64,000 nucleotides of DNA, taken from the sequence record NC_048053.1, one strand, 5' to 3'. The notes below the pieces were generated by a model. That model worked only from the letters and a program-made list of their open reading frames with translations. It was not told the origin of the DNA and made no database searches. A program made the position numbers and the translations under genes. This document shows, piece by piece, positions 14,143 to 59,260 of the stretch. How positions within the stretch are numbered: position 1 is the stretch's first letter; each line of letters starts with the position of its first letter.

Positions 14143-14201
14143 AGGTCTGCAAATTGCTGTCCAAAATACCGCTCGAAACTCTCCCTTTTTCTTGATATCC
14201 T
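14143..14201 (+). promoter_or_regulatory. box-type promoter (GCAAA 14149, -10 TATCCT 14196)
   Basis: Member of the 10-copy family with fixed spacing. Confidence 0.75.
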
Positions 14202-14264
14202 AAACCCTCTAGGGCGCATTGCGTCCACATACTGTCAATAACCCATATAGAAGGATTCTCCGCT

Positions 14265-14600
14265 ATGTCTACTATTTCTGACGTGAAAGGTATTGTTGCT
14301 TGCGTGCTGACTAATCCGGTTACGCTTCCTCTAACTGTTGCGTTTGGAAGCGCCTACGTCGATCCGGAATATCAACTCGAAATCTCCGAACGTGATATGC
14401 AGGATGTAACGCCGCTCGATCTGGAAGAACAAACTGTTTTGCTTAATGCGAAGATCGATGCAAACAAAAATGTGCGTTACATTTTAATCGGTGAATGGAA
14501 TGCGCTTGAATCTTTCATGAAAGAAAATTTCCGTGTGGGAAGTTATCATTCCTATATGCAGAAACTGGAAGCCGAAGATAAATACCGCAACAAAATCTAA
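14265..14600 (+). CDS. hypothetical protein
   Basis: ORF downstream of the conserved promoter box. Confidence 0.65.
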   Translation: MSTISDVKGIVACVLTNPVTLPLTVAFGSAYVDPEYQLEISERDMQDVTPLDLEEQTVLLNAKIDANKNVRYILIGEWNALESFMKENFRVGSYHSYMQKLEAEDKYRNKI

Positions 14601-14660
14601 ATTGCTCTGTGCGCTCAATAGTGGGCGCACTTCTCAAACACTGTTTAAGGATAAATTTTT

Positions 14661-15140
14661 ATGTACTCATTAAATGAAATCGTTCAGAAGATCATTAACC
14701 GTTTGCCCGATGTTGCTGAAATCAGCAATCTCGAATTCGTTCACAAAAGTGGTTGTGATTATGTTTACTTCCAACTGCACGGCATTACTTATCGTGTTGA
14801 TGCTGGCTTGTTTGTAGAAGAGAAAGAAGGTTCGTTTTTAGTTTCTTCTAGTGCTGCTCGCAATGTTCAGGCTGTTCTTCGCGGTGAGCGTGAGACTCTG
14901 ATCAATGTTGAAGCGCGAAACAAAGCAGTGGATGCTATCGTCAACAACGCATCACACATCGAATTGCAGGAAGTTTTGATTGGTATCGGCGAACCGGAAG
15001 AAGGTACGTTAGAAGAATTGCAAAAAGCTGTGCGCGACTGGCTGCATGGTGACAGCAAATTGTTGATCGAAAAAATGGAAATCGTCTGGCTGTTCTTTGG
15101 TCACGATAAAGCTACGGCATTCAATGAGGCGTTTCGCTAA
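14661..15140 (+). CDS. hypothetical protein
   Basis: AAGGA Shine-Dalgarno. Confidence 0.65.
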   Translation: MYSLNEIVQKIINRLPDVAEISNLEFVHKSGCDYVYFQLHGITYRVDAGLFVEEKEGSFLVSSSAARNVQAVLRGERETLINVEARNKAVDAIVNNASHIELQEVLIGIGEPEEGTLEELQKAVRDWLHGDSKLLIEKMEIVWLFFGHDKATAFNEAFR

Positions 15141-15655
15141 TGAACATCGAAACCATTTTGAAACACACGCCGGATCAGTACAAAGAAAAAGTAATTGCTT
15201 GCCTGAACAAGTACGCGCCGATTGTTGAGAAATTTCAGGAAGAGATTTTCATTCGTTTAGTAGAAGTGTCCAACAAGCCTTATATAACTTCTGCTTCTGA
15301 ATATCTCTTTCCGGTGAAAGGCATTTCTATTTATATGCGCTATGGGGCGGGGCGTTGTGGTCGTTATGGTCACAATACTTTGTGCATTGCAAACATCGAA
15401 GTGCCAAAACGTATGGAACACAAAGGCTTCTTCACGGCGCTAATCTTTTCTTTGATTGCCGAATGTCAGGAACGCAAAATCATTCTTATGGTGGAGAATC
15501 CTCTTGAGAGATTCTTTCAGGATTTTCTTTTGCGCATTGGCTTTATTTGTCCGAACAGAAACGGTTTAGGTATTGGCACGTTTCATCGTCCGATTGATGA
15601 AGGCCAGATCAGTCTTTACCCGTTCTACAATATGGATATCGAACATGCAGAATAA
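15140..15655 (+). CDS. GNAT-fold acetyltransferase-like protein
   Basis: LCIANIEVPKRMEHKGFFTALI resembles GNAT motif A (V...R.KG). ENP...FLLRIGF resembles motif B. Confidence 0.55.
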   Translation: MNIETILKHTPDQYKEKVIACLNKYAPIVEKFQEEIFIRLVEVSNKPYITSASEYLFPVKGISIYMRYGAGRCGRYGHNTLCIANIEVPKRMEHKGFFTALIFSLIAECQERKIILMVENPLERFFQDFLLRIGFICPNRNGLGIGTFHRPIDEGQISLYPFYNMDIEHAE

Positions 15656-16070
15656 CTACGCTGTTAATATGGTCGCTGGTTTCATTCGTGAAATAGCGCG
15701 AGCGCCGCATAGAATCTTTAACGAAGTTCCAATTCGTTTTGGTTCTGGTGAAACTGTTGTATCAGTCGAGAAAGAATCTCACGCGATTGTTGCAACGATG
15801 GTTGATTGTCCTATCGAATCGCACGAAGAACTTTTAGCTTTCGTGAACGCAACATTCAAACAGCTTTCCGGCTATCGTGTTACGTTGCGTTTTCTTGGCG
15901 GTCTGGATCTGAATCAATATGCCGATGATCATTTGCATGAAATTGCCGAACACTGGCAATGCAAATACGACATGGTGCGAACTAACTATTATTCTTTGGA
16001 AGTGTTTCGTTGTCTTCCATACAAAGAGGGGCGAAAAGTTGAAATTTCGCAAACTACTGACCCGCAATAA
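15645..16070 (+). CDS. hypothetical protein (start ATG 15645)
   Basis: In frame with ORF 15573..16070. Confidence 0.55.
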   Translation: MQNNYAVNMVAGFIREIARAPHRIFNEVPIRFGSGETVVSVEKESHAIVATMVDCPIESHEELLAFVNATFKQLSGYRVTLRFLGGLDLNQYADDHLHEIAEHWQCKYDMVRTNYYSLEVFRCLPYKEGRKVEISQTTDPQ

Positions 16071-16314
16071 AAACAGACGCTCCATTTCTGCAAGCTGTTT
16101 TATTGGACGTTTGTTTTTGGAAATTGGCGTAGGGCGTGAACTGTGGTACTTCACGCGCTTTGGTAAAAATAACGATCATCGCATTTATCATTTGATTCAC
16201 GTAGGTGTTACGCGTCTGGTGAATCCTAGCGGCGAAGCGCATACTGATATGCTGGTGATCTCATTCCTCCTGCTAAATATTAAATTTGGTTGGATGACAA
16301 TTAAGGATAAGTAA
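16039..16314 (+). CDS. hypothetical protein (probable TTG start)
   Basis: Fills the gap between genes. GAGGG precedes TTG 16039. In frame with ORF 15919..16314. Confidence 0.35.
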   Translation: MKFRKLLTRNKNRRSISASCFIGRLFLEIGVGRELWYFTRFGKNNDHRIYHLIHVGVTRLVNPSGEAHTDMLVISFLLLNIKFGWMTIKDK

Positions 16315-16532
16315 TGGCTGACTATACCAAAGAAGCACTTGAGCAAATGGACATTGCTCAATTGACAGACGTTGCTGATGAGTTTCGTTTGTATGAGGAT
16401 ATGAGCGACGATGATGACGCTCCGGATCAATCTGAAATGATCGAAGATATTCTGGCAGAGCAAGAACGCTTGAATCGAGCTAATGAATATGCTTTGAACC
16501 GTTTGAAAAATTCTATCTTCACGCGAGATTAA
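16314..16532 (+). CDS. small acidic Rho-N/HeH-like protein
   Basis: LEQMDIAQLTDVADEFRL...QSEMIEDILAEQ has the helix-loop-helix pattern of Rho N-terminal modules. Confidence 0.55.
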   Translation: MADYTKEALEQMDIAQLTDVADEFRLYEDMSDDDDAPDQSEMIEDILAEQERLNRANEYALNRLKNSIFTRD

Positions 16533-19110: not shown

Positions 19111-19141
19111 TAGGGAGTGGGCGAAAGCTCATTCCCTTTTG
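19111..19141 (+). terminator. intrinsic terminator, identical to 9297..9326
   Basis: Same 30-bp sequence. Confidence 0.85.
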
Positions 19142-19177: not shown

Positions 19178-19236
19178 AAGTCGGCAAATCCTTGTCCGAA
19201 AATTCGCTGGTTTTGGCTCTCTTTTTCAGGCATACT
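19178..19236 (+). promoter_or_regulatory. box-type promoter (GCAAA 19184, -10 CATACT 19231)
   Basis: Member of the 10-copy family. Confidence 0.75.
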
Positions 19237-24299: not shown

Positions 24300-25016
24300 A
24301 TGGCAAACCTTCTTAAACAGTGTGAACGAAAATTTATCTTTGCAGCCAACGCGGAATCCATGTCTGCAATGAGCTACACGATCCATACTGCTGAAAAATT
24401 GGATTGTGGTAAGAAAGAAATTTACGTTGGCCTGCATTTCCAGCACGAAACAAAAGTGACTATTCATAACGAGGCCGCAATTCCTTTGAATGGTTTCGTT
24501 CGCAAACTGCGACTTCTGCATACCAAACTGATTGAGATTGTTGACGCAATGCGCGATGAGAAGCCCGTTTGTTTCCGCGTGTGGCTCGATCAGGATGTGA
24601 AATATTTCACATCCTCTATTTGTGCAATGATTGGAGATAATGGATACGGTTTTGTTGAATTGTCTTCTTGCACAAAGACAATTCGTTTCAATCTGGACGA
24701 GCACGAAGAAATGCGTATCGGCTTTATCAACATGGCACTCTTCATTGCTGATCTTATCGGATTGTTGCAGACTCGCTACAGTAAATATTTTATTGACGTA
24801 GAAAAACTGCGTAAAAGTATTCCTAGATTGAAGCGTGTTTTCGCCGAACATGTTTCTGTCTATAACGTGAAAACCAAAGATGAATTCGAAAAAGCACTGG
24901 AGAAATTCATCTTAAAAGAATCGCGCGGCGACAATGATGCTACTTCTCTTCTGTACGAAGAGTTGGAACAGTACGCCGAAGAACTTCGAATTGAAAACGA
25001 AAATTGGGAACTCTGA
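24300..25016 (+). CDS. hypothetical protein
   Basis: AAGGA Shine-Dalgarno, 238 aa. Confidence 0.7.
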   Translation: MANLLKQCERKFIFAANAESMSAMSYTIHTAEKLDCGKKEIYVGLHFQHETKVTIHNEAAIPLNGFVRKLRLLHTKLIEIVDAMRDEKPVCFRVWLDQDVKYFTSSICAMIGDNGYGFVELSSCTKTIRFNLDEHEEMRIGFINMALFIADLIGLLQTRYSKYFIDVEKLRKSIPRLKRVFAEHVSVYNVKTKDEFEKALEKFILKESRGDNDATSLLYEELEQYAEELRIENENWEL

Positions 25017-25258
25017 TGGACAGACACTGCCGTGCTTTTGATCTAATCGTTCAGGAACTCAAGCGGGAATTACGCAGTGAAAATATTTCCCCTGAGAAGT
25101 TCGCTCGTATCGAAAAAGCTCTTACTGACCTGCGCGATCTGCATATCTATCAGGCGGTAGAGTCTGGACTTGATCATAAAAATATCGCGCTTGGTTACAG
25201 CATGAGTACAGGGCGCGTTACTCAAACTCACAATTCAATGAAAAGGAAGTTCCCTTGA
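25016..25258 (+). CDS. small protein with possible C-terminal HTH
   Basis: GLDHKNIALGYSMSTGRVTQ has an HTH-like pattern. Confidence 0.45.
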   Translation: MDRHCRAFDLIVQELKRELRSENISPEKFARIEKALTDLRDLHIYQAVESGLDHKNIALGYSMSTGRVTQTHNSMKRKFP

Positions 25259-38443: not shown

Positions 38444-38485
38444 AAAGGGAACCTGTAGGAATAACTTATAGGTTCCCTTTCGTTT
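38444..38485 (+). terminator. intrinsic terminator after the SLT gene
   Basis: AAAGGGAACCTGTAGG / CTTATAGGTTCCCTTT stem. Confidence 0.7.
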
Positions 38486-45657: not shown

Positions 45658-46008
45658 GTGAAAACTATCAAATTCCATTTTGGCGCAAGCCAGTTAAACA
45701 CGCTCACACTTAACCGTGATGCAATCAAATCTGAATCGCAAGTTAAACAGATCCTGAATATCCTGATGTGCCCTGCAAGTGTTTGGGAAGCGATTGTGTC
45801 TAACGACAACGTTAAGCAGGTTACGCTTTTTAACAGCGCCGCAGAAATGGCTCCGTATGTTTCAGCACATCAAGCTATTCATCATTTGGACAGAAACAGC
45901 GATACTTTCACGGAAGAGTTTCGTGCGCTGCTTTCTACGCATAATGCGATCTTCCTGAACGGCACCGATATTCAGATTCTGCCGATTAGTGAAGATGAGA
46001 TCGATTAA
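45658..46008 (+). CDS. hypothetical protein
   Basis: GAGG Shine-Dalgarno, GTG start. Confidence 0.6.
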   Translation: MKTIKFHFGASQLNTLTLNRDAIKSESQVKQILNILMCPASVWEAIVSNDNVKQVTLFNSAAEMAPYVSAHQAIHHLDRNSDTFTEEFRALLSTHNAIFLNGTDIQILPISEDEID

Positions 46009-46065
46009 CTCTGCAAAACAGTGTCCAAAATAGCGATGGAATTTTGGAACACAAATCTGTAAAAT
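46007..46065 (+). promoter_or_regulatory. box-type promoter (GCAAA 46013, -10 TAAAAT 46060)
   Basis: Member of the 10-copy family. Confidence 0.8.
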
Positions 46066-46157
46066 GTAGTCAGAGGCAAGTGCCTCAACAAGCGTGTAAG
46101 GATTTACGGGGTTTTCACCTTACATGCTTTCAACGTAAATCCCAAAGGAAACAAATC

Positions 46158-46895
46158 ATGCCTAACAACAAAACTTCCGTTCCTTCTCGCAAAGAATTCG
46201 CAGCAACTAGAGCGGCGGCAAAAATGAAATCTGCTCCTGCTTCTGTTCGTGCGAAAAATTCAACGAAAGGTGTTGGTCGCGAAACTGATGCTGATCGTTT
46301 GGATAAATTTGTGGTTGCGGTTCTGGAAGAATGGCGTGTAGCCAAAGAGAATAATCTCGAAGGCTCCGATCAAAACATCATCAAAGTTAGTATGCGCGAA
46401 ATCAATTTGCTCATGTCTCGCTCTTTGAAAAACACGCGTGTATCTCGACTGCACGATCTGATTAACGATACGTTATCCGGATTGAACATCGTAGACGTTT
46501 ACGGTTCGTGGGTGTTCGTTGATTGGGATTCTCCAGATTGTTTGTTTATCAAACTGCCGGAAACATCGACCAACGCGCTGCGTGTGAGTATTTCTTTCCC
46601 GAAAGGAAGTTCTGATTACTCGTTTCGCAAATCTACTGAGAAATTGATTGAACATGGTTTCGGTGGTGATGACGAAGACGATGATCAAACAGTAGTTGAT
46701 GATGGCGACATTGATCGTGAATATGATCGCCGTCCTGAGAATGTTCGTAAGACAGAAAAGCAATTGAGGTCTTGGACTCTTGAGCAATTACAAAATTTCG
46801 TAATTGAAAACAAGATTGAGGTCTGGGCCGGTGCTGATTCTAATTACGAGACACTTCTTGTTGCCGTGTTGGACTTCAAAACTAAACAGGCATAA
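46158..46895 (+). CDS. hypothetical protein with C-terminal HeH-like module (start ATG 46158)
   Basis: AAGGA Shine-Dalgarno. C-terminal LRSWTLEQLQNFVIENKI...ETLLVAVL. Confidence 0.7.
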   Translation: MPNNKTSVPSRKEFAATRAAAKMKSAPASVRAKNSTKGVGRETDADRLDKFVVAVLEEWRVAKENNLEGSDQNIIKVSMREINLLMSRSLKNTRVSRLHDLINDTLSGLNIVDVYGSWVFVDWDSPDCLFIKLPETSTNALRVSISFPKGSSDYSFRKSTEKLIEHGFGGDDEDDDQTVVDDGDIDREYDRRPENVRKTEKQLRSWTLEQLQNFVIENKIEVWAGADSNYETLLVAVLDFKTKQA

Positions 46896-46903
46896 TTGAT
46901 TAT

Positions 46904-46930
46904 GGGTGGCACTTCGGTGCTGCCCTTTTT
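46904..46930 (+). terminator. intrinsic terminator
   Basis: GGGTGGCAC-TTCG-GTGCTGCCC-TTTTT. Confidence 0.8.
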
Positions 46931-46962
46931 AACTTTCTGGAGAGATTTTTAATAGGAATAAG

Positions 46963-47343
46963 ATGATGGGCTACATTGATACTCTGGTTGAAAACCACAA
47001 TCTCCATCCTCAAGAGCGTCGTGATAAATATCAAACGTTCTCGCTCAAAACTAAGCCGCGTAAAGCTGGCGGCGTTGTTAGAATTGATTTGCTTCGCGCT
47101 ATGGCTTTTGTTGGTGAGACGAATTTTAGCGAAGAGGCACAATTAAAATTCATTTCAGATTATAATTCGTTTCACTCTGAGGATCTTCATCCTCTGCTCA
47201 TGTATCGTACAACTGAACCTGTCAATTCTCGGCGTGGTTGGAAACACGCAACTTACATTGTTCGTCTGCCGGATCGTGGAGATAAAATCCACGAAGCGAA
47301 AATTGATGACGGTTCAATTATTGTTGGGGAGGCAAGATTCTGA
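46963..47343 (+). CDS. hypothetical protein
   Basis: AGGA Shine-Dalgarno. Confidence 0.6.
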   Translation: MMGYIDTLVENHNLHPQERRDKYQTFSLKTKPRKAGGVVRIDLLRAMAFVGETNFSEEAQLKFISDYNSFHSEDLHPLLMYRTTEPVNSRRGWKHATYIVRLPDRGDKIHEAKIDDGSIIVGEARF

Positions 47344-47708
47344 TGCCTACAATCGAAGAAGTAAAAAACAGCGCAACCATTTATCAATTTCTGCAAAATC
47401 CGTATGGTGTAGTTCGCGCCGGATCGTACAAACCAAATCTTTTGGATTGTTGGGCGTTAGTTGTCGATACGATTCCGAAATGCTTTGTCGCGCTGTGGGG
47501 AAAAATCTGCGAACTTAGTTGGCATATGTCGATTCGTGGTCTGCTTATCTGGCTTTTATTTACGCCGCTCTGGATTTTGATTGTTGTGCCGATGCCGCTA
47601 ACGTTTTGGATTTGGGGAACGTATGTTTATTTCTATATGCGGGGCGAACCAGAACGGCATAAGAGGATTCAGGAACGATTGGACAGAAAACTTGATTCCT
47701 TGATATAG
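47343..47708 (+). CDS. membrane protein
   Basis: TGATG overlap. Trp-rich hydrophobic segments. Confidence 0.65.
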   Translation: MPTIEEVKNSATIYQFLQNPYGVVRAGSYKPNLLDCWALVVDTIPKCFVALWGKICELSWHMSIRGLLIWLLFTPLWILIVVPMPLTFWIWGTYVYFYMRGEPERHKRIQERLDRKLDSLI

Positions 47709-47712
47709 ATAG

Positions 47713-47771
47713 AACTCTGCAAAATAGTGTCCAAAATAGCGGTTGTTTCTGCCGCTTCGTTTTGATACACT
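47713..47771 (+). promoter_or_regulatory. box-type promoter (GCAAA 47719, -10 TACACT 47766)
   Basis: Member of the 10-copy family. Confidence 0.8.
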
Positions 47772-47871
47772 ATTTGGACAGGGCAGCAATGCCCTACAAG
47801 ATTCAACGTGAAGTGGAAACTTTTTGTAGGCAAGGAAGCCTACACTTTTTTGCAAAGTCTCCGATTAAGGG

Positions 47872-47930
47872 AACTCTGCAAAATAGTGTCCGAAATTGCG
47901 ATTGATAATATCGCTACTTTATAGCACTAT
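47872..47930 (+). promoter_or_regulatory. box-type promoter (GCAAA 47878, -35 TTGATA 47902, -10 CACTAT 47925)
   Basis: Member of the 10-copy family. Confidence 0.75.
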
Positions 47931-47995
47931 TTAATCTCACTCGGCGCAGTGCCGAAACAACAAGCCTCAACTAATATTTCTTAGGAGAAATAATC

Positions 47996-49612
47996 ATGGC
48001 AATTGCAACCTCTACCAAACTGATCGGCAAAAACATCGTTCTGCTGGACGGCACCAAAACCAAAATCACTGACGCAATGGCAACTGGTTACAAAGTTGCT
48101 GATCGTTCTGTTCGTGTTGCGTCAAAACAAGTTGCTAAGAAAGGCGCTTGCTATTATGAGATTCCGGTTACGTCTCTGCGTGAACTGATCGATTCCGGTG
48201 AAGGTTACGTTTCTTTCGCTGACAAAGCGATGCAGAAAAAAGTTGGCACTGACGCTTTCCTCGAAAAGCCTGCTAAAACTTCTGGCCGCAAACCGAAAGA
48301 AGAAAAATCTTCCGGTCGCAAACCTAAAGAAGAGAAAACTTCTAACGTGCGTCCGAAACGTGGCAGCAAACCTACCAAAGAAGAAGACGACGCCGAAGAT
48401 AAAGCGTCCCGCCGTGTTAAACGTCGCGGCAATAGCGATGCAGGTTACGGCGCTCTGGCTGAGTTTCTGATCAACGGCGGTAACAGCAAGAAGAAAGTTT
48501 CCCTTGCTGCTATCGATCAGGATCTGGCAACCGTTCTTACTGAACGTCTGGTTAGCACGGTAAAAGAAACTTCGCTGGCGAAATTCGACGGCAACAACGC
48601 AATGATTCAAAACGCATTCGATGTTGGTTACTCAACTGAATTCGATGCTACTGGCGGCGACGTTCGCGTAACACTGAACATCAAATACGCGCTGGAACAG
48701 CCTGAGCCGGAAGAAGTAAACGGTGGTTTCGAAATTTCTCCGGAACTGGCGAAGAAAATCAAAGCGCGTGTTGGTAAAACCGTTGGTAAGAAACTCGCGG
48801 CTGCAATCGCTGAACACCTCGGCGTTGAAGCGTCCGATATGACGGCTGGTACTCTCCTGTCGCGTGAGGGTGAAGATGGTCAGTTTGTTTTCTGTGGCGC
48901 AAGCGGCGAAGACAATAACAAAGCTGTACTGTTTAACACCGAAAGCGAAAAATTCCGCACTGTAGGCGGCGCTTCTCTGGCTAACTACTCTATCGTTGAG
49001 GAAGACGAAGAGGAAGAAGAGTCTGAGGAAGAAGAGGAAGAAGAGATTGAGGAAGAGGAAACCGAAGAAGAGGAAGACGACGCCGAAGGCGAAGACGATT
49101 CCGAAGACGGTGATGACGATTCCGAAGACGGTGACGATGACGCAGAAGGCGAAGATGACGAGGAAGATTCTTTCGAATACGCTTCCGTAAATAAAAAGCA
49201 ACTCGCTAATGTGAACAAAAAAATCACGTCTAAAAATCTGCCGATGCTGTCTAAACTGTGGCGCGTTCCGCAAAGCGCTCTGGTCACTGGCCTGAAACTG
49301 ACTGATGGTGATGATACTTTCATCTTCATTGGTATGGATGATGACGGCGATCTGCTGGTAGTTGAAGAAGGCGCGAAAGAAGTTGTTGCGTTTGACGCTG
49401 ACGATATTCAAAGCCTGTCTGATTACTCTCCGGTTGTTGGTGAAGCAGAAGACGACGCAGAAGGCGAAGACGAAGACTTCGAAGATGACGGCGAAGATTA
49501 CGACGACATGGACATTGAAGAACTGCGCGATGTTGTAGTTCAGAAAGGTCTGGCAAAAGTTCGCGCCGCCGAAAACATGACGGAGAAAAAACTCCGCTCA
49601 CTGCTGAAATAA
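47996..49612 (+). CDS. multidomain acidic protein: N-terminal beta domain, K-rich repeats, duplicated beta domains, D/E tracts, C-terminal HeH-like module
   Basis: AGGAG Shine-Dalgarno, 538 aa, strongly biased codon usage. Confidence 0.8.
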   Translation: MAIATSTKLIGKNIVLLDGTKTKITDAMATGYKVADRSVRVASKQVAKKGACYYEIPVTSLRELIDSGEGYVSFADKAMQKKVGTDAFLEKPAKTSGRKPKEEKSSGRKPKEEKTSNVRPKRGSKPTKEEDDAEDKASRRVKRRGNSDAGYGALAEFLINGGNSKKKVSLAAIDQDLATVLTERLVSTVKETSLAKFDGNNAMIQNAFDVGYSTEFDATGGDVRVTLNIKYALEQPEPEEVNGGFEISPELAKKIKARVGKTVGKKLAAAIAEHLGVEASDMTAGTLLSREGEDGQFVFCGASGEDNNKAVLFNTESEKFRTVGGASLANYSIVEEDEEEEESEEEEEEEIEEEETEEEEDDAEGEDDSEDGDDDSEDGDDDAEGEDDEEDSFEYASVNKKQLANVNKKITSKNLPMLSKLWRVPQSALVTGLKLTDGDDTFIFIGMDDDGDLLVVEEGAKEVVAFDADDIQSLSDYSPVVGEAEDDAEGEDEDFEDDGEDYDDMDIEELRDVVVQKGLAKVRAAENMTEKKLRSLLK

Positions 49613-49678
49613 AAACTAACGGATTGGCGCGGTATTTCTGCCGCGCTTCCTCAACCTCTTTTAAAGATTCAAGGAAAA

Positions 49679-50614
49679 ATGAAAATGGCTATCACTCCTA
49701 ACAAAGATCTGATTAACGTTGTTGTTCGTTTGCTGGATGGTAAAACTTCTCGCATTACTGGTATTACCAAAACCGGTTACACTGTCGAAGGCGTCGATAA
49801 ACAAATTCCGATGACGGAACTTGTGCGCAAAGGCCGCGTGTTGCAGCAAATCGATCCGGCGAAGCTGAAAGATCTTCCGGCTAATCAAACCTATCTGATG
49901 AGCGACGGCTATTTGCATATCCACACTCGCGATGCAATGCGGCGCATCAAGAAAGGCGAAACCGTTGATATCCCGCCGTCAAAAACTGAATGGCAGCGCA
50001 AAACTAAAACGGTGAAAATTGTGAAACCGAAAGGCGAAGTGAAGCCGAAAAAGATTACGCCGAACAAACCTGTTCGTGCTGATGTGTCGAAAGTTAAAAC
50101 CGCTCCAAAGCGTTTGAAAACTGACGCGCAGAAAACGAAAAAGGCTGTCACAAAATCTGTGACTAAATCAACTCCGGTTGATCGTACCGCCGAAACTACT
50201 GAGACGTTGTTCTTAGTTATCGAAAATGCTCGCTCGAATCGCAAAGCGTTCAAAGAGTTTAAAAATATCGTTTCAACTGCAATCGGCGTTACGGCAAAAG
50301 ATCTGCCGGATACTGCAAACGAGATCATCGAAAAATTCGGTGCTGCGAAAGTACGCAAAGGTCTGGCGGCGCTCTCTGAGCATTTTAATCGCCGTCGCGC
50401 AGAATTAAGTCTGCCGCGTAGTCTGAAAGCGTTTATCGCAAGCGGTCGTTTGACTCTGACTCCTGCGCAATTACGTCAGGTGTTGGAAGTGATTGCTCCG
50501 ACAATTCCGAAAGAAGTTGTTGCTGATGTTGTGAAATATTATTTCAGCGGCGAATTCTTTATCGGCAAAACTCCGGATCGCAACACTCCGAAAAAAGTTA
50601 ACGGTGGTAATTAA
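49679..50614 (+). CDS. basic K-rich protein whose N-terminal domain is paralogous to the upstream gene
   Basis: VRLLDGKTSRITGITKTGYTV vs IVLLDGTKTKITDAMATGYKV. Confidence 0.75.
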   Translation: MKMAITPNKDLINVVVRLLDGKTSRITGITKTGYTVEGVDKQIPMTELVRKGRVLQQIDPAKLKDLPANQTYLMSDGYLHIHTRDAMRRIKKGETVDIPPSKTEWQRKTKTVKIVKPKGEVKPKKITPNKPVRADVSKVKTAPKRLKTDAQKTKKAVTKSVTKSTPVDRTAETTETLFLVIENARSNRKAFKEFKNIVSTAIGVTAKDLPDTANEIIEKFGAAKVRKGLAALSEHFNRRRAELSLPRSLKAFIASGRLTLTPAQLRQVLEVIAPTIPKEVVADVVKYYFSGEFFIGKTPDRNTPKKVNGGN

Positions 50615-50988
50615 TGGAAAAATCTGACGTGATCGTTAACGGAATCTTCGGTCAGGTTTATTCTCGGCTTGTTCTCGCCGCAACGCAACGCGTTCTTGTT
50701 TATTACAATGAACTGTGTCCTGTTGTTTTCGGTATTCAGTTTTCAAAAATGAATAAAGAACAGGCCGATGTGATTTGGGATATTCTGATCGAAACAATGC
50801 GTATGGACGCGAAGGCGGGGCGGCTTCCACTTGCCGCTCTTTATATCTCACGCAAATATGAAAAGAAACCCGGCGCAGGCTTTTGGTCTGCATATCACAC
50901 ACTATACGGCACTGCAATCTCGGAAGATGAGTGGTCTGAACTTGTGGAAAAAATCTGGAATTCTTATTCCATGCAGGAACGATCATGA
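50614..50988 (+). CDS. hypothetical protein, possible winged-helix DNA-binding domain
   Basis: VYYNEL...RLPLAALYISRK..KKPGAGFW...EKIW resembles the P.LS..VV......PG.GF wHTH pattern. Confidence 0.45.
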   Translation: MEKSDVIVNGIFGQVYSRLVLAATQRVLVYYNELCPVVFGIQFSKMNKEQADVIWDILIETMRMDAKAGRLPLAALYISRKYEKKPGAGFWSAYHTLYGTAISEDEWSELVEKIWNSYSMQERS

Positions 50989-51461
50989 AAAAGAAATCTG
51001 CTCCGAAAATACCGCGCTCGAAAGTAGTGCCTCCTAGCGAGCGTGCTGAAATGGAACAACTCGTTGCCTACTATCTCTCATCGGTAGGTAACAGCATGAC
51101 GATGGTAACGCAGTTAACGTTTTTCAACGTCACGAACTACTGGCACATGACGGATATACACGATCCCGAAGCGTCCACGCCGAAGAATCACAAACTTCTG
51201 CGTGAGATAACGCAAAAGCTGAACAAATACTGTAAAGATAATGGGAAGCCTCTTTCTTTGCTTCCGTTGCCAGATCAGCCCGGCGTTGAATTAAACGGCG
51301 AAACTGTTGTGGTGCTTCCGTGGGAATTTTTGAATACTGCGGAGTCGCGTCAAGCTGTTGATGCGTTATTTGAAATGGTATCTGCAAATGGTAATACAGA
51401 TCTGGTTGCAGATGCTGATCTGAGGGATAAATATGTTTTTAGGGCACCTACTGACGTTTGA
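50985..51461 (+). CDS. hypothetical protein
   Basis: ATGA overlap. Confidence 0.65.
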   Translation: MKKKSAPKIPRSKVVPPSERAEMEQLVAYYLSSVGNSMTMVTQLTFFNVTNYWHMTDIHDPEASTPKNHKLLREITQKLNKYCKDNGKPLSLLPLPDQPGVELNGETVVVLPWEFLNTAESRQAVDALFEMVSANGNTDLVADADLRDKYVFRAPTDV

Positions 51462-52701
51462 AGATCGTCAAAAGCTGTTAAAACTTTATGGCTGGAAAAT
51501 CATTGATACCTCTCCCAAGTATCTTGAAACTTCCAAAATGGTTTGTGGCGTTCGCCACGTTCGAACCAAGTACGGTGCGCGTGAACAAGTGTACGATGTT
51601 TTGTTTCCGCGCATTCGTGCAAAAACGGTTCTGCGTTTGTTTAAAAACTTGCGCCGTGGTCAACGTGGAATTCTGCTTGAAGAACTTTCAATTCTGTTTG
51701 AGTTGGGATTGGGTGTTCCGAAGCAGAAACAAATCGCCGATTATATCCTGCATCTTAACGATGTGGATGATCCAGAAGTCGGGATTAAGTACATTGGCAA
51801 ACTGATAAAACAGTATATCGCCAATTACAAGTTTTCGATGGATGATCATGATTACATGTACTGCGCTCAATTCACTGAGCAATTGTTGCTGATGAAGAAA
51901 TTCATCGGGAAGACGAAACAGAATGTGAAGAAATCTGTGCGCGTTCCGGAAGGAAAGCCGTGTGTCATGGTTTACTCACTAACTGATTTCAACGGTGCGA
52001 AATTCAGTTTGGTAGATGCTTACGCTTTCTCATCAAACGGTTTTCCGATACCGATTTCAACATCTGTGATGCGAAAAGAGTTTGGTGCTGTTCCGCGCCA
52101 GTTTAACAGCTACGCGTTGAAGTCGCACGGACAGTATATGTTGGTTTTCGGCATTCTGTATTGGAACGAAGACGGCGAAGAAAACTTCCAGCACATGCAG
52201 ACGCTGGACGATGATGAATACGAAGTTCTGGTTGACCATTACGATAAGTATTGTTCGAAAGAACTTCTTGCGGCTCGCAAGTACCGCAACGTTGATCGTG
52301 AAGTGCATAACGCTCATCGTCACGCAATCGAAGTTCTGGCAGTGAAAGAAGACGCAACCAAAAAAGAAAGGCGTTTGGTGCGCGAAGCGGAAACCTATTT
52401 CGCTGAACGTGATAAAGCTGTAAAGCAACTATCACGATTGGAACGAAAGGCCGCAAGCAAACTTGCTGAATCTGGTCCGGTTGCTTCTGCTAAGTTCTTT
52501 GCTCTCGATATCGGGGCAATTGGAATTAGTCGTAAGCTGCGTACATTGGTTAGCACTCCGCCGGAAGTCCTCGCGAAAAGTTTAAACGCTTGGGGATTCA
52601 CAACGGCGCTGTCTGCGAATCATAAATGTCTATCGTCTCGGATCTATTACGGCGTAACTTCTACGCGCCGTAGCTGGCAAATTGAAACGGAGAAAAAATA
52701 A
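51433..52701 (+). CDS. hypothetical protein
   Basis: GAGG Shine-Dalgarno, 422 aa. Confidence 0.7.
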   Translation: MFLGHLLTFEDRQKLLKLYGWKIIDTSPKYLETSKMVCGVRHVRTKYGAREQVYDVLFPRIRAKTVLRLFKNLRRGQRGILLEELSILFELGLGVPKQKQIADYILHLNDVDDPEVGIKYIGKLIKQYIANYKFSMDDHDYMYCAQFTEQLLLMKKFIGKTKQNVKKSVRVPEGKPCVMVYSLTDFNGAKFSLVDAYAFSSNGFPIPISTSVMRKEFGAVPRQFNSYALKSHGQYMLVFGILYWNEDGEENFQHMQTLDDDEYEVLVDHYDKYCSKELLAARKYRNVDREVHNAHRHAIEVLAVKEDATKKERRLVREAETYFAERDKAVKQLSRLERKAASKLAESGPVASAKFFALDIGAIGISRKLRTLVSTPPEVLAKSLNAWGFTTALSANHKCLSSRIYYGVTSTRRSWQIETEKK

Positions 52702-55661
52702 TGAATTCCTCTCAAACTTTTGGAACGGCGTCGCACACTGCATCTGTTACCGATCAGAATCTGAATGCAGGTTCTCCGGCAACTAAAAGCACGGTAATTG
52801 TGGTGCTGTGTCCGACTGTAAACGGCAACCAAATTTTCCGTGCGGAAAATAACGGTAATGTTTCTCAAACTGTCGCGCAGGGTAAAGCTCTCAATCGTCT
52901 GACAGATCTTCTGTCGATGGCGGGGGATAACGCTGGTCATGAACTGATGAGCGCTGCCGCTTCTATTGATGAGCGCTGCAAGCTGAAAGACAGTGCTGCG
53001 ATGATTCTCCGCTATACTGTAAATGGTAGTGTAGAGCGTCTCCAGAAAACTCTGTCTGAGGCGTTGTTTAAGGTCGGCGAAAAAGCTGCAAATGATAATA
53101 CTACGTTAGCGTCGTATGCCAGTCGTTTTGGTGTTCATGCAATCGCAGTATCTGCGGAAAGTAATTCTTACGCAGTCGTTACAGCGATTCGTGATCAACT
53201 GGAAGCGTTCGACCGCAACGAAAGCAATTTTGTTGTTGCGCAGAAAGCAAGTGTTGAGCAAATCAATGCTCCGGTTATCGACTGGTCTGCAACTTCCGCA
53301 AATGTTGTTCTGGAAGGTGCTGCGTTAAGTTTTGTAGTTCGCTCGGAAAAAACCCGCGTGAATTTCCTGATTAATCCTATTAAGGGGAATAATGTTGTGA
53401 GTAACGATCAGAAAGCTCTGTCTGTTTTCAGCCGCGAGAATCAGGCTTCCGTAACTATGGAAGAAAAAGTCGCTGCACTTGAAGCACTCGGTTACGATCT
53501 CGGCGCTATGCCGGATGAAGAGATCGCGCTGTCTTATGATAGCGAGCGTGTTGATTTTCTGGAAGGCGCAGGTGTTGAAGTGAATTCCAGCGACGAAGGC
53601 GAAACTGACGACGCCGAAGAAGGTGAAGAAGAATCCGAAGAAGGTGAAGAGGAAGAGGAAGAAGAAGACGAAGAAGAATTCTCCGCTTCTGAAACTCTGG
53701 CAGAAATTCTGACTAACGCCCAACTGGATCGCGCTCAACTGAAAAAGCTGGTGTTCCTCGCAGGTGGTAAAGTGTTTACCACTGACACCGAAGAAAGTCT
53801 GACGGTGAAACTGCTGGAACTGGTCGAAGAAAAAGACTACAGCGAATTCTTCCAGTTTGCGCTGGACGCTAACGAACGTCTCGGCGGCGTTGATGGCTTT
53901 GCTGACTTCCTGCACGCGGAAAGCGTTCTGGCTACCGACGAAGATGAGGACGACGAAGGCGAAGAAGGCGAAGAAGGCGAAGACGAGGATGATTCTGATG
54001 AAGATGATTCCGAAGACGAAGACGAAGATGATTCTGGCGAAGACGAAGGTGAAGACGAAGATGATTCCGAAGAAGATCTTTCTTTCAACGCTGTGGTAGA
54101 ATTCATCGAACTTATCGGCGGCGATCTGAATCGCGAAGTAATTCGCGCAATTGCTCGCTCCGAAAGTTTCGGCCTGAAAACTTACAAGAACGAAGACGCT
54201 GCTGCGATTTTCGAACGTGTAGTTGAAGTGCTGAACAACAACGAAATCTCTCCGGAAGATTTCGAACAACTGATTCACGATCTGGCGCAGATTGAAGTTG
54301 TTGCCGATGCGTATCCGGAATGGGCTGAGTACGAAGTCAATCCGACGGACTACACTGAACTGTTTGCCTACGAAGGCGGTTCTCTGACTCACGAACAGCG
54401 CGTTGCAGCGCTGGAAGCTGCCGGAAACGATCTCGAAGGTATGGGCATGGTTGCCGTGCTGAAACTTTTCGAAGACTATCGCCGTGAAAATGGTTACGGT
54501 CAGGAAAGTGAAGAAGCCGAAGACGAAACCTATGCGCTGGATTCCGGTGAAGGTGAAACCGACGACGAAGGCGAAGAAGCTGGCGACGAAGAATCCGAAG
54601 AGTCGGAAGAAGAATCTGAGGAAGAAGAATCCGAAGACGAAAACGACGAAGCGTTTGTTTCTGAATCTTCTGAAAACGATCTCGGTACTTTCCTGCGTGT
54701 GCGTCAGGAACAAATGCTGTTGGTCAACTTCGCGCTGACTGATCGCAGTACCTTCGAAGATCTCGCCGAAGAACTTCGCGACCAGAACGGTGTTGATTAT
54801 CGTGTACCAATCAACATGAACGACGAAGCAGAAGGTTCTATGTACCTGCCGCTGACTGTCGCGAGCGATTTGCTGTCCGGTTCCGCTGCGCTTCCGTTTA
54901 TGTCTGATCGCAAAACTTTCAACGTAGAAGATTACGCTGAAAAAATGGCTAACACTATGCGCGGTCAAATCTCGGCGCTGCTGTATGAAGGCCGTCTGGA
55001 AGCTGGACAAGATCCGTATACTAGCGGTTTAGTCCTCGGTGATTTCGTCGAAGATGAAGACGAAGATCTGAATGAGGATGAACTGAGTTCGGAATATCTG
55101 AGCGAACTGGTTGGCGATCATATTCCGATGGCTTCTCTGTATAACGCACATGTTGGCGTGCGTCCGGTTGTTGTCGATACCGAAAGCACTGTTTTGAACA
55201 CTATCGTTCTTAACATTGCAATGCCTTGCATTTGGGGCATCGGCAAGAAGAAAGTAAAAGATCTGGTAATCAGCACTTACAATCGTGTGCTTGCGCACAT
55301 CGGCGAAACTGATATTAAAGTCTATGTCGGTTTCACCCTGAATGCTGGTTCTCTGGTTTCTGATGAAAACCTGCAATCGGTTGTTCGCTCTGTCGGCGAA
55401 ATGGCGAGTGAAGAAATCGCTGTTCACTCCTTCACTACCAACGATGTTCAACGCATCGAAGAAAGTGAAGATCTGGTTGAAGCTGCGCATTCTGTCGGCA
55501 CTGAAAATCTGCCGCTGGCGCTGTTGTCCTCCGGTATCGCTGACGCTGCATTTGCGAACGGCGGTGATCTGATTGTTATCCTGTCTCCTGTTGGTGACAG
55601 TGACGACGAAGATGATTCTGACTCTGATGAAGATGAAGATGAAGACGAGTCCGAAGAGTAA
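52701..55661 (+). CDS. very large acidic protein with repeated helical modules and D/E tracts
   Basis: 986 aa. Repeats EEKVAALEALGYDL / EQRVAALEAAGNDL, plus HeH-like LDRAQLKKLV and LNREVIRAIA segments. Confidence 0.8.
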   Translation: MNSSQTFGTASHTASVTDQNLNAGSPATKSTVIVVLCPTVNGNQIFRAENNGNVSQTVAQGKALNRLTDLLSMAGDNAGHELMSAAASIDERCKLKDSAAMILRYTVNGSVERLQKTLSEALFKVGEKAANDNTTLASYASRFGVHAIAVSAESNSYAVVTAIRDQLEAFDRNESNFVVAQKASVEQINAPVIDWSATSANVVLEGAALSFVVRSEKTRVNFLINPIKGNNVVSNDQKALSVFSRENQASVTMEEKVAALEALGYDLGAMPDEEIALSYDSERVDFLEGAGVEVNSSDEGETDDAEEGEEESEEGEEEEEEEDEEEFSASETLAEILTNAQLDRAQLKKLVFLAGGKVFTTDTEESLTVKLLELVEEKDYSEFFQFALDANERLGGVDGFADFLHAESVLATDEDEDDEGEEGEEGEDEDDSDEDDSEDEDEDDSGEDEGEDEDDSEEDLSFNAVVEFIELIGGDLNREVIRAIARSESFGLKTYKNEDAAAIFERVVEVLNNNEISPEDFEQLIHDLAQIEVVADAYPEWAEYEVNPTDYTELFAYEGGSLTHEQRVAALEAAGNDLEGMGMVAVLKLFEDYRRENGYGQESEEAEDETYALDSGEGETDDEGEEAGDEESEESEEESEEEESEDENDEAFVSESSENDLGTFLRVRQEQMLLVNFALTDRSTFEDLAEELRDQNGVDYRVPINMNDEAEGSMYLPLTVASDLLSGSAALPFMSDRKTFNVEDYAEKMANTMRGQISALLYEGRLEAGQDPYTSGLVLGDFVEDEDEDLNEDELSSEYLSELVGDHIPMASLYNAHVGVRPVVVDTESTVLNTIVLNIAMPCIWGIGKKKVKDLVISTYNRVLAHIGETDIKVYVGFTLNAGSLVSDENLQSVVRSVGEMASEEIAVHSFTTNDVQRIEESEDLVEAAHSVGTENLPLALLSSGIADAAFANGGDLIVILSPVGDSDDEDDSDSDEDEDEDESEE

Positions 55662-55671
55662 TCTGTAAATA
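55661..55671 (+). promoter_or_regulatory. CTGTAAATA motif upstream of the coiled-coil gene
   Basis: Intergenic, immediately after a stop codon. Confidence 0.55.
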
Positions 55672-55716
55672 AATGGTGTAGGGCGAAATGCCTTGCACCA
55701 TTTTTAAGGATTCCCA

Positions 55717-57272: not shown

Positions 57273-58073
57273 ATGGCTAAAGCAAAGAAAACCTCTAACG
57301 TGGCAATGGAAACTCTGGCTAAAATGGCTGGCCTGCTGGTTGAAGCGGCTGCCGATGCAGAAGTTGCAGAACTTCTCTCCGAAGCTGGTCTGACTGTTGC
57401 CGCTAAAGGTAAAGGCAAAGCTAAAGCTAAAGCTGAACCGAAAGCAAAAGGCGGCAAGAAAAAGAAAGTGACTGCCGCACAAATCGTTGAAGCCATCGAA
57501 GATGGTGAGTCCATCGAACTCGAAGGCACTGACGAAAAAGTTCTGCGCGAGGCCGTGGTCAAAGCAAAACTGACCAGTAAGAAAAAAGCGGAGAGCCTCG
57601 ATGAAGAGGAACTGCTGGAACTGATTCAGGAAGCGTTTGGTTCGTCTGACGAAGATGAAGACGACGAAGACGAGGATGATTCTTATGAAGATGATTCCGA
57701 TGATGAAGACGGCGACGACGAAGACGACGAGGATGATGAAGACTCGGACGACGACGAAGACGGCGACGACGAAGACGACGAAGACGGCGACGACGAAGAC
57801 GACGAAGACGACGACGAAGACGACGAAGATGATGAGGACGACGAAGACGAGGACGAAGATGAAGATCGTGATCTGGAAGACCTCGACGAAGACGAACTCC
57901 GCGCGTTAGCCATCGAAGAAGGCGTGTTCACCAAAGCGCAGGCCAAAAAGAAAGATGAAGATGCACTCCGCGAAGCACTGGAAGCGCACTTCGCTGGTGA
58001 CGACGATGAAGACGAAGACGAAGACGACGAAGACTTCGACGACGAAGACGAAGACGACGAAGACGACGAGTAA
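57273..58073 (+). CDS. extremely acidic protein with two HeH-like modules (nucleoplasmin/chaperone-like composition)
   Basis: DEKVLREAVVKAKLTSKKKAESLDEEELLELIQ and DEDELRALAIEEGVFTKAQAKKKDEDALREALE, separated by ~65 D/E-rich residues. Confidence 0.75.
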   Translation: MAKAKKTSNVAMETLAKMAGLLVEAAADAEVAELLSEAGLTVAAKGKGKAKAKAEPKAKGGKKKKVTAAQIVEAIEDGESIELEGTDEKVLREAVVKAKLTSKKKAESLDEEELLELIQEAFGSSDEDEDDEDEDDSYEDDSDDEDGDDEDDEDDEDSDDDEDGDDEDDEDGDDEDDEDDDEDDEDDEDDEDEDEDEDRDLEDLDEDELRALAIEEGVFTKAQAKKKDEDALREALEAHFAGDDDEDEDEDDEDFDDEDEDDEDDE

Positions 58074-58244
58074 TTAATCATCGACGGCACGCCCCGCTAA
58101 GTTAAATGACGAGCGCGGGGCAAAAAATCTTCAAAGATTTTTGAAGAAAATTTTGTAGAAGTATGTTGAACATGCTAATGTACTTCTACGCAGAAAACGA
58201 ATTTCTGTTTTTCTCCACAACGAATTTTTATACTGAGGTATATC

Positions 58245-58766
58245 ATGACTAAGAAAGTTATTTCCGGCCTGAACAAACAAATCAAATCCATCGAAAAATC
58301 CGATGCCGCTCTGGTGAAGACCATCGAAGGTTTGCAGAAACAGCGTGAAAATCTGGCGTCTACCAAAGACGGTCTGAACGAACAGGTTGCTGCGCTGTCG
58401 GGCGAAGCTGCTCCGGTTAAAGGTAAAGCTAAGGCTGAACCGAAAGCTGCTAAAGGTAAAGCTAAAGCTGAACCGAAAGCTGCTAAAGGCAAAAAAGCTG
58501 CCGAAGAAAAACCGGCTAAAGTGAAAAAAGAAAAAGCCGCTAAAACTGAAAAGCCTGCTAAGGCTGACAAGAAAGCTGCGAAAGGCGAAGGCAAAAAAGC
58601 CAAAGCTGAAAAGCCTGCCAAAGCTGATAAGAAAGCTGCGAAAGGCGAAGGCAAAAAAGCCAAAGCTGAAAAGCCTGCTAAGGGCAAAAAAGTGAAAGGC
58701 GAAAAAGCCAGCAAGAAAAAAGGCAAAAACGCCGACGCAGGTTTTGAATTCGAACTGGACGATTAA
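58245..58766 (+). CDS. histone H1-like Lys/Ala-rich repeat protein (AlgP/Hc2-like composition)
   Basis: N-terminal coiled coil, then KGKAKAEPKAA x2 and EKPAKADKKAAKGEGKKAKA x2, ending in a short acidic tail FEFELDD. Confidence 0.7.
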   Translation: MTKKVISGLNKQIKSIEKSDAALVKTIEGLQKQRENLASTKDGLNEQVAALSGEAAPVKGKAKAEPKAAKGKAKAEPKAAKGKKAAEEKPAKVKKEKAAKTEKPAKADKKAAKGEGKKAKAEKPAKADKKAAKGEGKKAKAEKPAKGKKVKGEKASKKKGKNADAGFEFELDD

Positions 58767-58792
58767 TAGTTCCCTGCGCTGATTAAGTTGAT

Positions 58793-58826
58793 ACGGGTTA
58801 GGGATTTCTCCCTAGCCCGTTTTTCG
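58793..58826 (+). terminator. intrinsic terminator after the H1-like gene
   Basis: ACGGGTTAGGGA-TTTC-TCCCTAGCCCGT-TTTT. Confidence 0.85.
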
Positions 58827-58858
58827 TTTCTGACCGATTTTTCTCGATAGGTTTCTAA

Positions 58859-59200
58859 ATGGATCTTCACTCACGTTTCAAAAAACTTAACGATGATTTG
58901 CTCGAACTTCAAAATGCTGTTCATCGCGTAGTTCGTATCTCTCCAACAAAATTCGCCGTTTGTTTTTATGATCGTCATGAGCAATCGCTGCGAACCAACG
59001 TTATTGACTCTCGTTCAGCACACGAAATAAAACTCATTCAAGAAATGTCCGGTGCTGAGTTGCAGGCATACGGCAATTTCGTTTCTGCCATTCAGGAATG
59101 GTGTGAAGCTGAATCCCCCGGTGATTTTCCTATCACGTATGACAAAGCAGACTCTGACAGCTACCGCACGCTGATTGATGCTATGACCGTTCGGGAATAG
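58859..59200 (+). CDS. hypothetical protein
   Basis: ORF between a terminator and the topoisomerase promoter. Confidence 0.6.
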   Translation: MDLHSRFKKLNDDLLELQNAVHRVVRISPTKFAVCFYDRHEQSLRTNVIDSRSAHEIKLIQEMSGAELQAYGNFVSAIQEWCEAESPGDFPITYDKADSDSYRTLIDAMTVRE

Positions 59201-59201
59201 C

Positions 59202-59260
59202 AACTCTGCAAATCTGTGTCCAAAACGTCGATAGCTTATCTAATACTTTAGTGCTAGAAT
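59202..59260 (+). promoter_or_regulatory. box-type promoter of the topoisomerase operon (GCAAA 59208, -10 TAGAAT 59255)
   Basis: Member of the 10-copy family. Confidence 0.8.

Follow-up and report, generated by a model that had tools for sequence, protein, structure and literature searches.

A stretch of 64,000 nucleotides from sequence record NC_048053.1 (the window, in what follows) contains ten copies of a promoter in which a conserved two-part box lies at a fixed distance upstream of a -10-like hexamer, and comparative evidence supports reading the ten elements as one family of rightward sigma-70-type promoters with a weak -35 element. The DNA is that of vB_DsoM_JA29 (JA29 below), a Dickeya jumbo phage of the genus Salmondvirus with a genome of 253,323 bp. 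The window corresponds to record positions 186001–250000, and its positions 46000–52000 are 100% identical to positions 232000–238000 of accession MH460461.1. Positions are given in window numbering unless they are marked as record positions. The ten promoters, numbered P1 to P10 from left to right, head nine operons and one candidate small RNA, and between them serve a 45-kb accessory island plus the topoisomerase II genes. We put at about 0.5 the probability that all ten are rightward promoters of a single class, at which a sigma-70-type holoenzyme (that of the host, most likely) acts together with a phage-encoded protein that reads the box.

Copy number and extent of the box

The pattern GCAAA-N4-TGNCCNAAA, with at most one mismatch allowed, has 11 matches on the plus strand against 0.71 expected, a number that none of 100 shuffled sequences reaches. 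In ten of these the GCAAA starts at positions 14149, 19184, 26883, 34518, 38492, 42571, 46013, 47719, 47878 and 59208. The eleventh match, at 15055, is due to chance: it is located inside a coding sequence and scores less than 8 bits on the weight matrix of the family. This matrix was made from 24 Salmondvirus-type box copies and was used to scan both strands of the whole genome. The ten sites score between 35.7 and 52.8 bits and there is none between 8 and 35.7 bits, so that, given this clean separation from the background, the family has exactly ten members. All of them are inside the window (record positions 200149–245208), on the plus strand and ahead of plus-strand genes; every annotated gene of the window is on the plus strand as well, the minus strand containing none. 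The ten positions and their common strand had been proposed in a first-pass annotation made from the sequence alone, and both the pattern search and the whole-genome scan recover them. The same annotation placed the copies at gene starts, which is correct for nine of them, the copy at 47719 having no open reading frame between it and the next box.

In an anchored alignment the copies have the consensus AACTCtGCAAAt..gTGTCCaAAAt..CGcT.G, after which come a variable stretch and gTA.acT; this consensus agrees with the one written down earlier, but extends about 4 bp further in the 3' direction. When the -10 hexamer (offsets +47 to +52 from GCAAA) is set as -12 to -7, a convention used throughout, the box is a bipartite, asymmetric element of 33 bp that spans about -65 to -33. 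It contains two A-tracts, at about -57 to -54 and -45 to -42, and is most strongly conserved at the G/C-containing positions CTCTGC, GTGTCC and CGC. Conservation falls sharply at offset +27; the segment from +27 to +46 (-32 to -13) is the least conserved part of the promoter, and beyond it the -10 is found at a constant position.

Core promoter elements

The hexamers at +47 match TATAAT in 41 of 60 letters, compared with 16.9 ± 3.3 letters for random sets of ten positions (maximum 30; z about 7), and no other offset between +20 and +99 rivals them. Eight of the ten have the form TAnnnT, and all ten have A as their second and T as their sixth letter. The best offset for a -35 element is +24, which leaves a spacer of 17 bp; here the match is weak, at 29 of 60 letters or on average 2.9 of 6 per hexamer, with T as the first letter in all ten copies and TxG in nine. 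Both elements had been described at exactly these distances in the first-pass annotation, and its description stands. None of the ten promoters passes a generic sigma-70 scan.

In a set of 47 box copies from six genomes, the A and T at the second and sixth positions of the hexamer are kept in all 47. The extended -10 motif TGn is present in 21 of them (binomial p = 1.3e-13), including three of the ten copies in the window and five of the 24 Salmondvirus copies, and a T is found at -17 in 39 of the 47. Ribosome-binding sites and start codons are located downstream of the boxes, 90–145 bp from GCAAA. Three features together indicate rightward transcription, with start sites predicted about 6–8 nt after the hexamer: the strand, a -10 of sigma-70 type with TGn, and the location upstream of these translation signals. 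The hairpins that follow the -10 and the P8 unit with its terminator, both described below, lend the predicted starts indirect support.

Conservation in related phages

In phage JA13, which is 88–89% identical to JA29, ten copies are found at orthologous sites. Per site, the two phages differ at 7% of the box, 5% of the -10 and 15.5% of the spacer, and in no pair is there an insertion or deletion from offset -6 to offset +65 relative to GCAAA; the stretch that joins box and hexamer is thus constant in length and variable in sequence. Among 2.9 million viral contigs, the exact pattern is present only in JA29, in a JA11-type genome and in three related metagenomic jumbo-phage contigs, each with 5–8 copies and every copy with a -10 at +47. 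A scan of 185,579 bacterial genomes (one per species, 596 Gb) gave, among the matches listed, scattered sites in unrelated taxa, one contig with two copies and no Dickeya contig; the idea of a host regulon was rejected on the basis of this scatter.

The same box architecture is present in a syntenic island ahead of the topoisomerase genes in three more distant phages, Yersinia phage fHe-Yen9-02 and Erwinia phages Yoloswag and pEa_SNUABM_13. The Salmondvirus second half-box is TGTCCAAAA. The Yersinia phage has about ten copies of GCAAAT-N3-CGGCTAAAAT, with second half-box CGGCTAAAA, and Yoloswag has eleven copies of GCAAAT-N3-TGGTCAAAA, all with their -10s at +47, while the box of pEa_SNUABM_13 is GCATAAATCTGGACAAAAT, with second half-box TGGACAAAA. 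The G/C positions of the box are fixed within each lineage and different between lineages; Yoloswag and pEa_SNUABM_13 have different half-boxes and a common host, Erwinia amylovora. The -10 hexamers of the Yersinia and Erwinia phages come near to TATAAT, and in the Yersinia phage and Yoloswag a box precedes the topoisomerase gene, as in JA29. Pseudomonas phage PaBG, a more distant relative, has no island, and no box in the 52 kb around its topoisomerase and sigma genes. The DksA/TraR-like protein JA29_265, the cluster JA29_301–308, JA29_310 and JA29_311 are conserved in all box-bearing lineages; the cluster was not found in the PaBG regions examined. Scanning the full genome and its relatives, as had been suggested with the first-pass annotation, thus yields ten genomic copies and the same architecture in the relatives. 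This conservation indicates a functional family, and among PaBG-like enterobacterial jumbo phages it constitutes a lineage-specific class of promoter.

Comparison of lineages also bears on the strand that is read. In the ten JA29 copies the reverse complement of the box, TGGACA-N4-TTTGCA, has a GG and a GC spaced like those of the -24 and -12 elements of a sigma-54 promoter, and also the TGG...TTGCA letters, the sigma-54 consensus being TGGCACG-N4-TTGCW. Minus-strand promoters of this type, to which we give almost no credence, would fire antisense into the 3' ends of plus-strand genes, there being no minus-strand gene in the window. The reading is refuted by the relatives, in which the GG is absent (Yersinia phage TTTTAGCCG, Yoloswag TTTTGACCA, pEa_SNUABM_13 TTTTGTCCA) and the plus-strand -10 is fixed. 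Consensus sequences of other regulators were also compared with the box by eye; those for sigma-E, IHF, the marbox, the Pho box and lambda CII were rejected, as either their spacing or their letters do not fit.

The likeness of the copies might alternatively be due mainly to recombination, with the promoters acting as cassettes in concerted evolution and modular gene exchange. A repeated promoter with a stem-loop in a variable island of small open reading frames recalls the PeSLs and PmSLs of other phages (PMC4122927), the homology between JA29 and JA13 upstream of the boxes at 19184, 34518 and 47719 stops at the box (three of ten flanks), and one gene replacement begins 130 bp after P3. However, most break points in the JA29/JA13 blastn alignments are away from the boxes, and recombination would not hold the 47-bp register across four lineages, which makes this explanation quite improbable as the principal one. 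Gene conversion, which would make contiguous tracts alike and the spacer with them, is also unlikely, because conservation stops at +27 and the spacer varies freely, yet the -10 stays in position. A cassette role as a secondary property beside the promoter function is possible, though weakly supported.

Proposed mechanism and the reader of the box

In the mechanism that we favour, the host holoenzyme would recognise the -10, with its frequent T at -17 and TGn, and the poor T-W-G -35 at 17 bp. The 33-bp box would compensate for the poor -35: its A-tracts sit where the carboxy-terminal domains of the RNA polymerase alpha subunits (alphaCTDs) bind in upstream promoter (UP) elements, and at its G/C positions (CTCTGC, GTGTCC and CGC) a sequence-specific protein may bind and recruit or stabilise the polymerase. 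This reader would be phage-encoded, and would be either synthesised very early in infection or injected along with the DNA. Transcription would then begin at the predicted distance from the hexamer, in most cases at a G-rich stretch, and would often run on into a short stem-loop at the 5' end.

The box class is probably a host-sigma-70 class. Two sigma homologues of the phage, JA29_222 and JA29_317 (described below), fit the genome's two other motif classes better, because both are common to PaBG, which lacks the box. The reader is most likely phage-encoded, because the G/C positions are fixed within each lineage and differ even between phages of the same host; since the two Erwinia amylovora lineages differ, neither a host protein nor the host alpha subunit can explain the difference between their boxes. 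On this indirect argument from sequence comparisons a phage-encoded reader is plausible.

Several points weigh against this reading. Pfam and PHROGs searches with the 93 window proteins and with 89 further plus-strand proteins of JA29 gave no credible DNA-binding domain (the Pfam lists are complete for the former, and the latter were judged among the families listed), and neither did searches with 110 small proteins encoded in the islands of the Yersinia phage and Yoloswag. The selection of copies in Yersinia fHe-Yen9-02, Yoloswag and pEa_SNUABM_13 relied in part on the presence of a -10 within ± 1 bp, and the unfiltered Yersinia list of ten to eleven sites contains one hexamer at +48 and one that is unclear. 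No other sigma-70-like class is present in the genome, so some of the ten promoters may have to be used at time zero by host polymerase in its unmodified form. Furthermore, extended -10 promoters need no -35, and A-tracts alone could stimulate transcription in the manner of UP elements.

These last points lead to a serious, though less likely, alternative, in which the ten are activator-independent early promoters. Unmodified host sigma-70 would bind the (extended) -10 and the alphaCTDs would use the A-tracts as an UP-like element, the extra conservation reflecting fine-tuning or ancestry. The register of the A-tracts matches that of the UP consensus, TGn and T at -17 are enriched, the -10s of the Yersinia and Erwinia phages are near TATAAT, and a search of the genome for a set of consensus sigma-70 promoters gave none, the matches being scattered and mostly inside genes. 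The better fit of both sigma homologues to other motif classes and the failure to find a transcription factor point in the same direction. Against it, the most conserved positions contain G/C and reach to -65, outside what alphaCTDs read; the box differs between lineages, even where two phages infect a single host species; and in Salmondvirus only five of 24 copies have TGn and the -35 element is weak.

As to candidates for the reader, Pfam and PHROGs searches with the conserved island proteins likewise gave no credible DNA-binding domain. The only lead, JA29_260 (25016–25258, 80 residues), has a sub-threshold match to the Pfam family Mor (E = 0.05, 14 bits against a cut-off of 24.9), and its carboxy-terminal stretch resembles a helix-turn-helix. 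It was rejected as the reader, as its homologues are restricted to JA11-like phages (Salmondvirus), with none in the other box-bearing lineages. Sequence searches of the PDB with JA29_222, JA29_305 and JA29_308 gave no match, and an AlphaFold model of JA29_308, a conserved and basic protein, has a mean pLDDT of 68.9 and no Foldseek match better than E = 0.05. The first-pass interpretation of a phage activator regulon therefore holds for the promoter family, its -10, its weak -35 and a box that overlaps the alphaCTD/UP zone and is unlike that of MotA, but not to the point of a candidate activator, as none was found. A more specific proposal, which we hold tentatively and at less than even odds, is that the box is a dock for a new phage transcription factor with a fold unrecognised by the family libraries, perhaps delivered with the DNA. 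Together with the alphaCTDs it would replace -35 recognition and switch on the whole accessory island of PaBG-like enterobacterial jumbo phages, and it would exist in at least four specificity variants, a natural series of orthogonal pairs of promoter and activator.

A sequence-specific phage protein could also act in the opposite sense, with the box as an operator for later shut-off, either by blocking alpha contacts or by trapping the polymerase. Lineage-specific conservation suits any sequence-specific binder, and the inverted half-site TTTGGACA at P8 could allow looping. However, this half-site is present at P8 only, the box is located upstream of the core, where activators usually bind, and a poor -35 suggests a need for help rather than restraint; an operator is improbable.

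Comparison with known promoters

T4 middle promoters have a MotA box (TGCTTtA) of 9 bp, centred at about -30, which replaces the -35, and AsiA remodels sigma-70 at these promoters. The JA29 promoters are similar in having a sigma-70 -10 (TAnnnT), no good -35 and a phage-specific box at a fixed distance, and in driving nucleotide and DNA metabolism genes that include the topoisomerase. They differ in that their -30 region is unconserved and their box is 33 bp long, bipartite and located from -65 to -33. Neither the MotA nor the AsiA Pfam family was found among the 93 window proteins, nor among the families listed for the 89 further plus-strand proteins. The architecture different from that of MotA promoters, with a box over the alphaCTD/UP zone, had been put forward in the first-pass annotation and is borne out, with the extent of the box now set at about -65 to -33.

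In the Mu Pm and late promoters (Mor and C), the P2 and P4 late promoters (Ogr and Delta) and the lambda CII promoters, the activator site lies between about -30 and -65. Like these, the JA29 promoters combine a poor -35 and a good -10 with an upstream site located where the activators concerned contact alphaCTD and/or sigma region 4. Unlike the dyads of Mor, C and Ogr, which for Mor and C are located at about -51 to -33, or the TTGC-N6-TTGC repeats of CII that flank the -35, the JA29 box is asymmetric and contains no dyad. The UP element, which is read by alphaCTD, is an A/T-rich segment from -59 to -38 with the consensus nnAAAWWTWTTTTnnnAAAnnn. The JA29 A-tracts are in register with the distal and proximal subsites of UP elements such as that of rrnB P1, and TGn and T at -17 are enriched as in extended -10 promoters. 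However, UP elements consist of A/T-rich sequence along their whole length and show no lineage specificity, whereas the JA29 box has GTGTCC in place of the central T-tract and is most strongly conserved at G/C positions, which change from one phage lineage to another.

The PeSLs and PmSLs of T4-type phages are near-identical repeats of a promoter and a stem-loop, found in variable regions of small open reading frames (PMC2839356, PMC4122927). The ten JA29 repeats resemble them in their stem-loops, their location in a 45-kb island of small open reading frames and their lineage-specific consensus. They are unlike them in what is conserved, which in PeSLs and PmSLs is the -35/-10 core and the stem-loop, with no upstream box, and in JA29 is the box, with a loose core. 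The weak link of the boxes to recombination break points and the presence of a hairpin in only about two thirds of the copies are further differences from PeSLs. Phage promoters that combine a -10 and a weak -35 with a box upstream are a known kind of element; the anatomy of this one is new.

The ten promoters and their operons

The accessory island is 45 kb long and contains about 75 genes, mostly small open reading frames with products of unknown function. Gene positions agree with the earlier proposal that the promoters head accessory operons and the topoisomerase genes. P1 (14143–14201, 42.4 bits) has the box AGGTCTGCAAATTGCTGTCCAAAATACCGCTCG, a weak -35 TCGAAA and TGa followed by the -10 TATCCT; it heads JA29_238–248 and has an orthologue in JA13. 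P2 (19178–19236, 35.7 bits; -35 TGGTTT, -10 CATACT) is preceded by a strong terminator at 19112–19137 and heads JA29_249–263, which include an RNA 2'-phosphotransferase. P3 (26877–26935, 39.5 bits; -35 TGTCTT, -10 TATTCT) heads JA29_264–274, with the DksA/TraR-like protein and a UvsE endonuclease. P4 (34512–34570, 48.3 bits; -35 TAGAAG, -10 TAGACT) heads JA29_275–283, with a dUTPase and a transglycosylase, and its -10 is followed by a strong 5' hairpin of -26 kcal/mol (z = -5). P5 (38486–38544, 47.2 bits; -35 TTGTTT, -10 TAAGAT) heads JA29_284–291 and lies just downstream of a strong terminator with a 16-bp stem (38444–38480).

P6 (42565–42623, 45.5 bits) has the second half-box TGCCTGAAA and the -10 TAAACT and heads JA29_292–297; its box (GCAAA at 42571) and the stop codon of JA29_291, the preceding gene, overlap. 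P7 (46007–46065, 52.8 bits; -35 TGGAAT, -10 TAAAAT) heads JA29_298–300. P8 (47713–47771, 50.9 bits; -35 TTGTTT, TGa and -10 TACACT), downstream of which there is no open reading frame, is the first of a tandem pair. The second is P9 (47872–47930, 46.9 bits), with a -35 TTGATA that matches in five of six letters and the -10 CACTAT; it too is preceded by a strong terminator and heads JA29_301–308. P10 (59202–59260, 44.0 bits; -35 TAGCTT, TGc and -10 TAGAAT) heads the genes for the topoisomerase II subunits, JA29_312 and JA29_313. Each of these promoters is on the plus strand and carries the box.

At 59320–59410, tblastn alignments of the topoisomerase subunit B to all relatives, including JA11 (94% identity), start at residues 29–31; either the annotated start may be too far upstream or the lysine-rich amino-terminal tail may be lineage-specific. 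The adjacent genes JA29_301 and JA29_302 (47996–50614) code for proteins with a common amino-terminal domain of about 60 residues (E = 3e-6), one of the proteins being acidic and the other very basic. The large acidic proteins JA29_273, JA29_306 and JA29_309 contain Asp/Glu-rich repeats, with runs of GAC, GAA and GAT codons at 32500–33000, 53600–55700 and 57640–58070.

Downstream hairpins and the P8 transcript

The 45 nt that follow the hexamer fold better than shuffled sequences (mean z = -1.2, p = 1e-6, n = 43). A short hairpin is present after about two thirds of the copies, with a sequence that varies from copy to copy.

P8 appears to be a self-contained transcription unit, because a terminator follows it and there is no open reading frame. 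The candidate small RNA runs on the plus strand from 47778, a start coordinate that is predicted, to 47852 and would be about 75 nt long. It consists of a 5' hairpin GGGCAGCAATGCCC, about 25 unpaired nt and an intrinsic terminator, TGTAGGCAAGGAAGCCTACA plus CTTTTTT; the terminator, at 47825–47844 plus the T-run, ends directly before the box of P9. In JA13 one stem-loop base is different. The unit is kept in two of the related metagenomic contigs, contigs B and C, and in contig B the hairpin is preserved through compensatory changes; Yoloswag has a longer analogue. The tandem pair of P8 and P9 itself is kept in JA13, in contigs B and C, in Yoloswag and in the Yersinia phage. An Rfam search of the window gave no family, for the P8 RNA or elsewhere. 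Just after the -10 of P8, at 47773–47781 (offsets +55 to +62), lies the inverted copy of the second half-box TGTCCAAA mentioned above, which is found at P8 only.

Other probable promoter classes and sigma homologues

A second motif, aAAtCTGTAAATa, is present at about 28 sites in both strand blocks of the genome, oriented with the downstream gene and without a -35. Its sites in the window are at 765–777, 5086, 9287, 29097, 30372, 55663, 57113, 57211 and 63072. The TAA of this class-2 motif frequently doubles as stop codon for the gene before it, and the motif resembles the T4 late promoter TATAAATA. Class-2 sites precede replication and recombination genes, among them those for DNA polymerase, helicase, ligase, clamp loader and primase, and also JA29_222. 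A third motif, CTAATTTTAA, is found on the minus strand at record positions 50–175 kb, where it lies 25–35 nt ahead of the genes for the sheath, the baseplate and other structural components of the virion, often just after a terminator; it is likely to be a late promoter class.

JA29_222 (806–1843), which is unannotated, is 33% identical (E = 2e-63) to gp118 of PaBG, a protein assigned to the sigma-70 family by its authors on the basis of HHpred (PMC7412058). JA29_317 (record positions 251822–252955), also unannotated, shows 28% identity (E = 5e-27) to PaBG gp112 and is a possible second sigma factor. Neither has a match in Pfam. Judging by eye from the alignment, JA29_222 appears to end after a stretch like region 4.1, without the helix-turn-helix of region 4.2.

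The box might be the recognition element of one of these two proteins, with transcription beginning within the box or directly downstream of it and with only a secondary part for the hexamer at +47. The first half-box AACTCTGCAAAT does resemble the class-2 motif, ranking in the top 0.01–0.3% of genome positions, and two sigma-like proteins are encoded (PMC7412058). However, the half-boxes score from -2.7 to 11.0 bits, compared with 16.3–22.4 bits for the 28 class-2 sites, the invariant T of class 2 is a C in all ten boxes, and the resemblance is absent in Yoloswag. PaBG has both sigma genes and no box, and the fixed -10, the TGn and the T at -17 would be left unexplained, all of which makes this explanation very improbable. 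As separate observations, the -10 region of P7 (46053–46066), AAATCTGTAAAATG, comes close to the class-2 motif, with a score of 13.9 bits that exceeds the 99.99th percentile for the genome, and so does that of P6 (42611–42624), TTCTGTAAACTG, come close to it; P6 and P7 could be read by two holoenzymes.

Candidate anti-defence genes

JA29_220 (56–505), annotated as a cyclic phosphodiesterase, matches the Pfam family of anti-CBASS Acb1 (7.5e-14) and 2H phosphoesterase families, and from these matches it is likely to be a nuclease that acts on cyclic nucleotides in anti-defence. The plus-strand proteins annotated as hypothetical at record positions 1–41, 176–186 or 249–253 kb include one with a Tad2-like Thoeris anti-defence domain (2e-14), and a GNAT acetyltransferase.

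Significance

The paper describing the phage makes no mention of promoters, and a literature search for the motifs gave nothing relevant. The clade to which this jumbo phage belongs has no RNA polymerase of its own, and no published transcription signals for it were found in the literature searched. The three classes, one sigma-70-type with a box, one like T4 late promoters and one ahead of structural genes, amount to a first regulatory map. In this map the 45-kb island and the topoisomerase fall into a single co-regulated set; ten transcription starts are predicted, and a candidate small RNA that is missing from the annotation is added. Should the box have a dedicated reader, this would be a phage activator of a new kind, with specificities that have diversified in nature, and the parts would be useful as orthogonal promoters.

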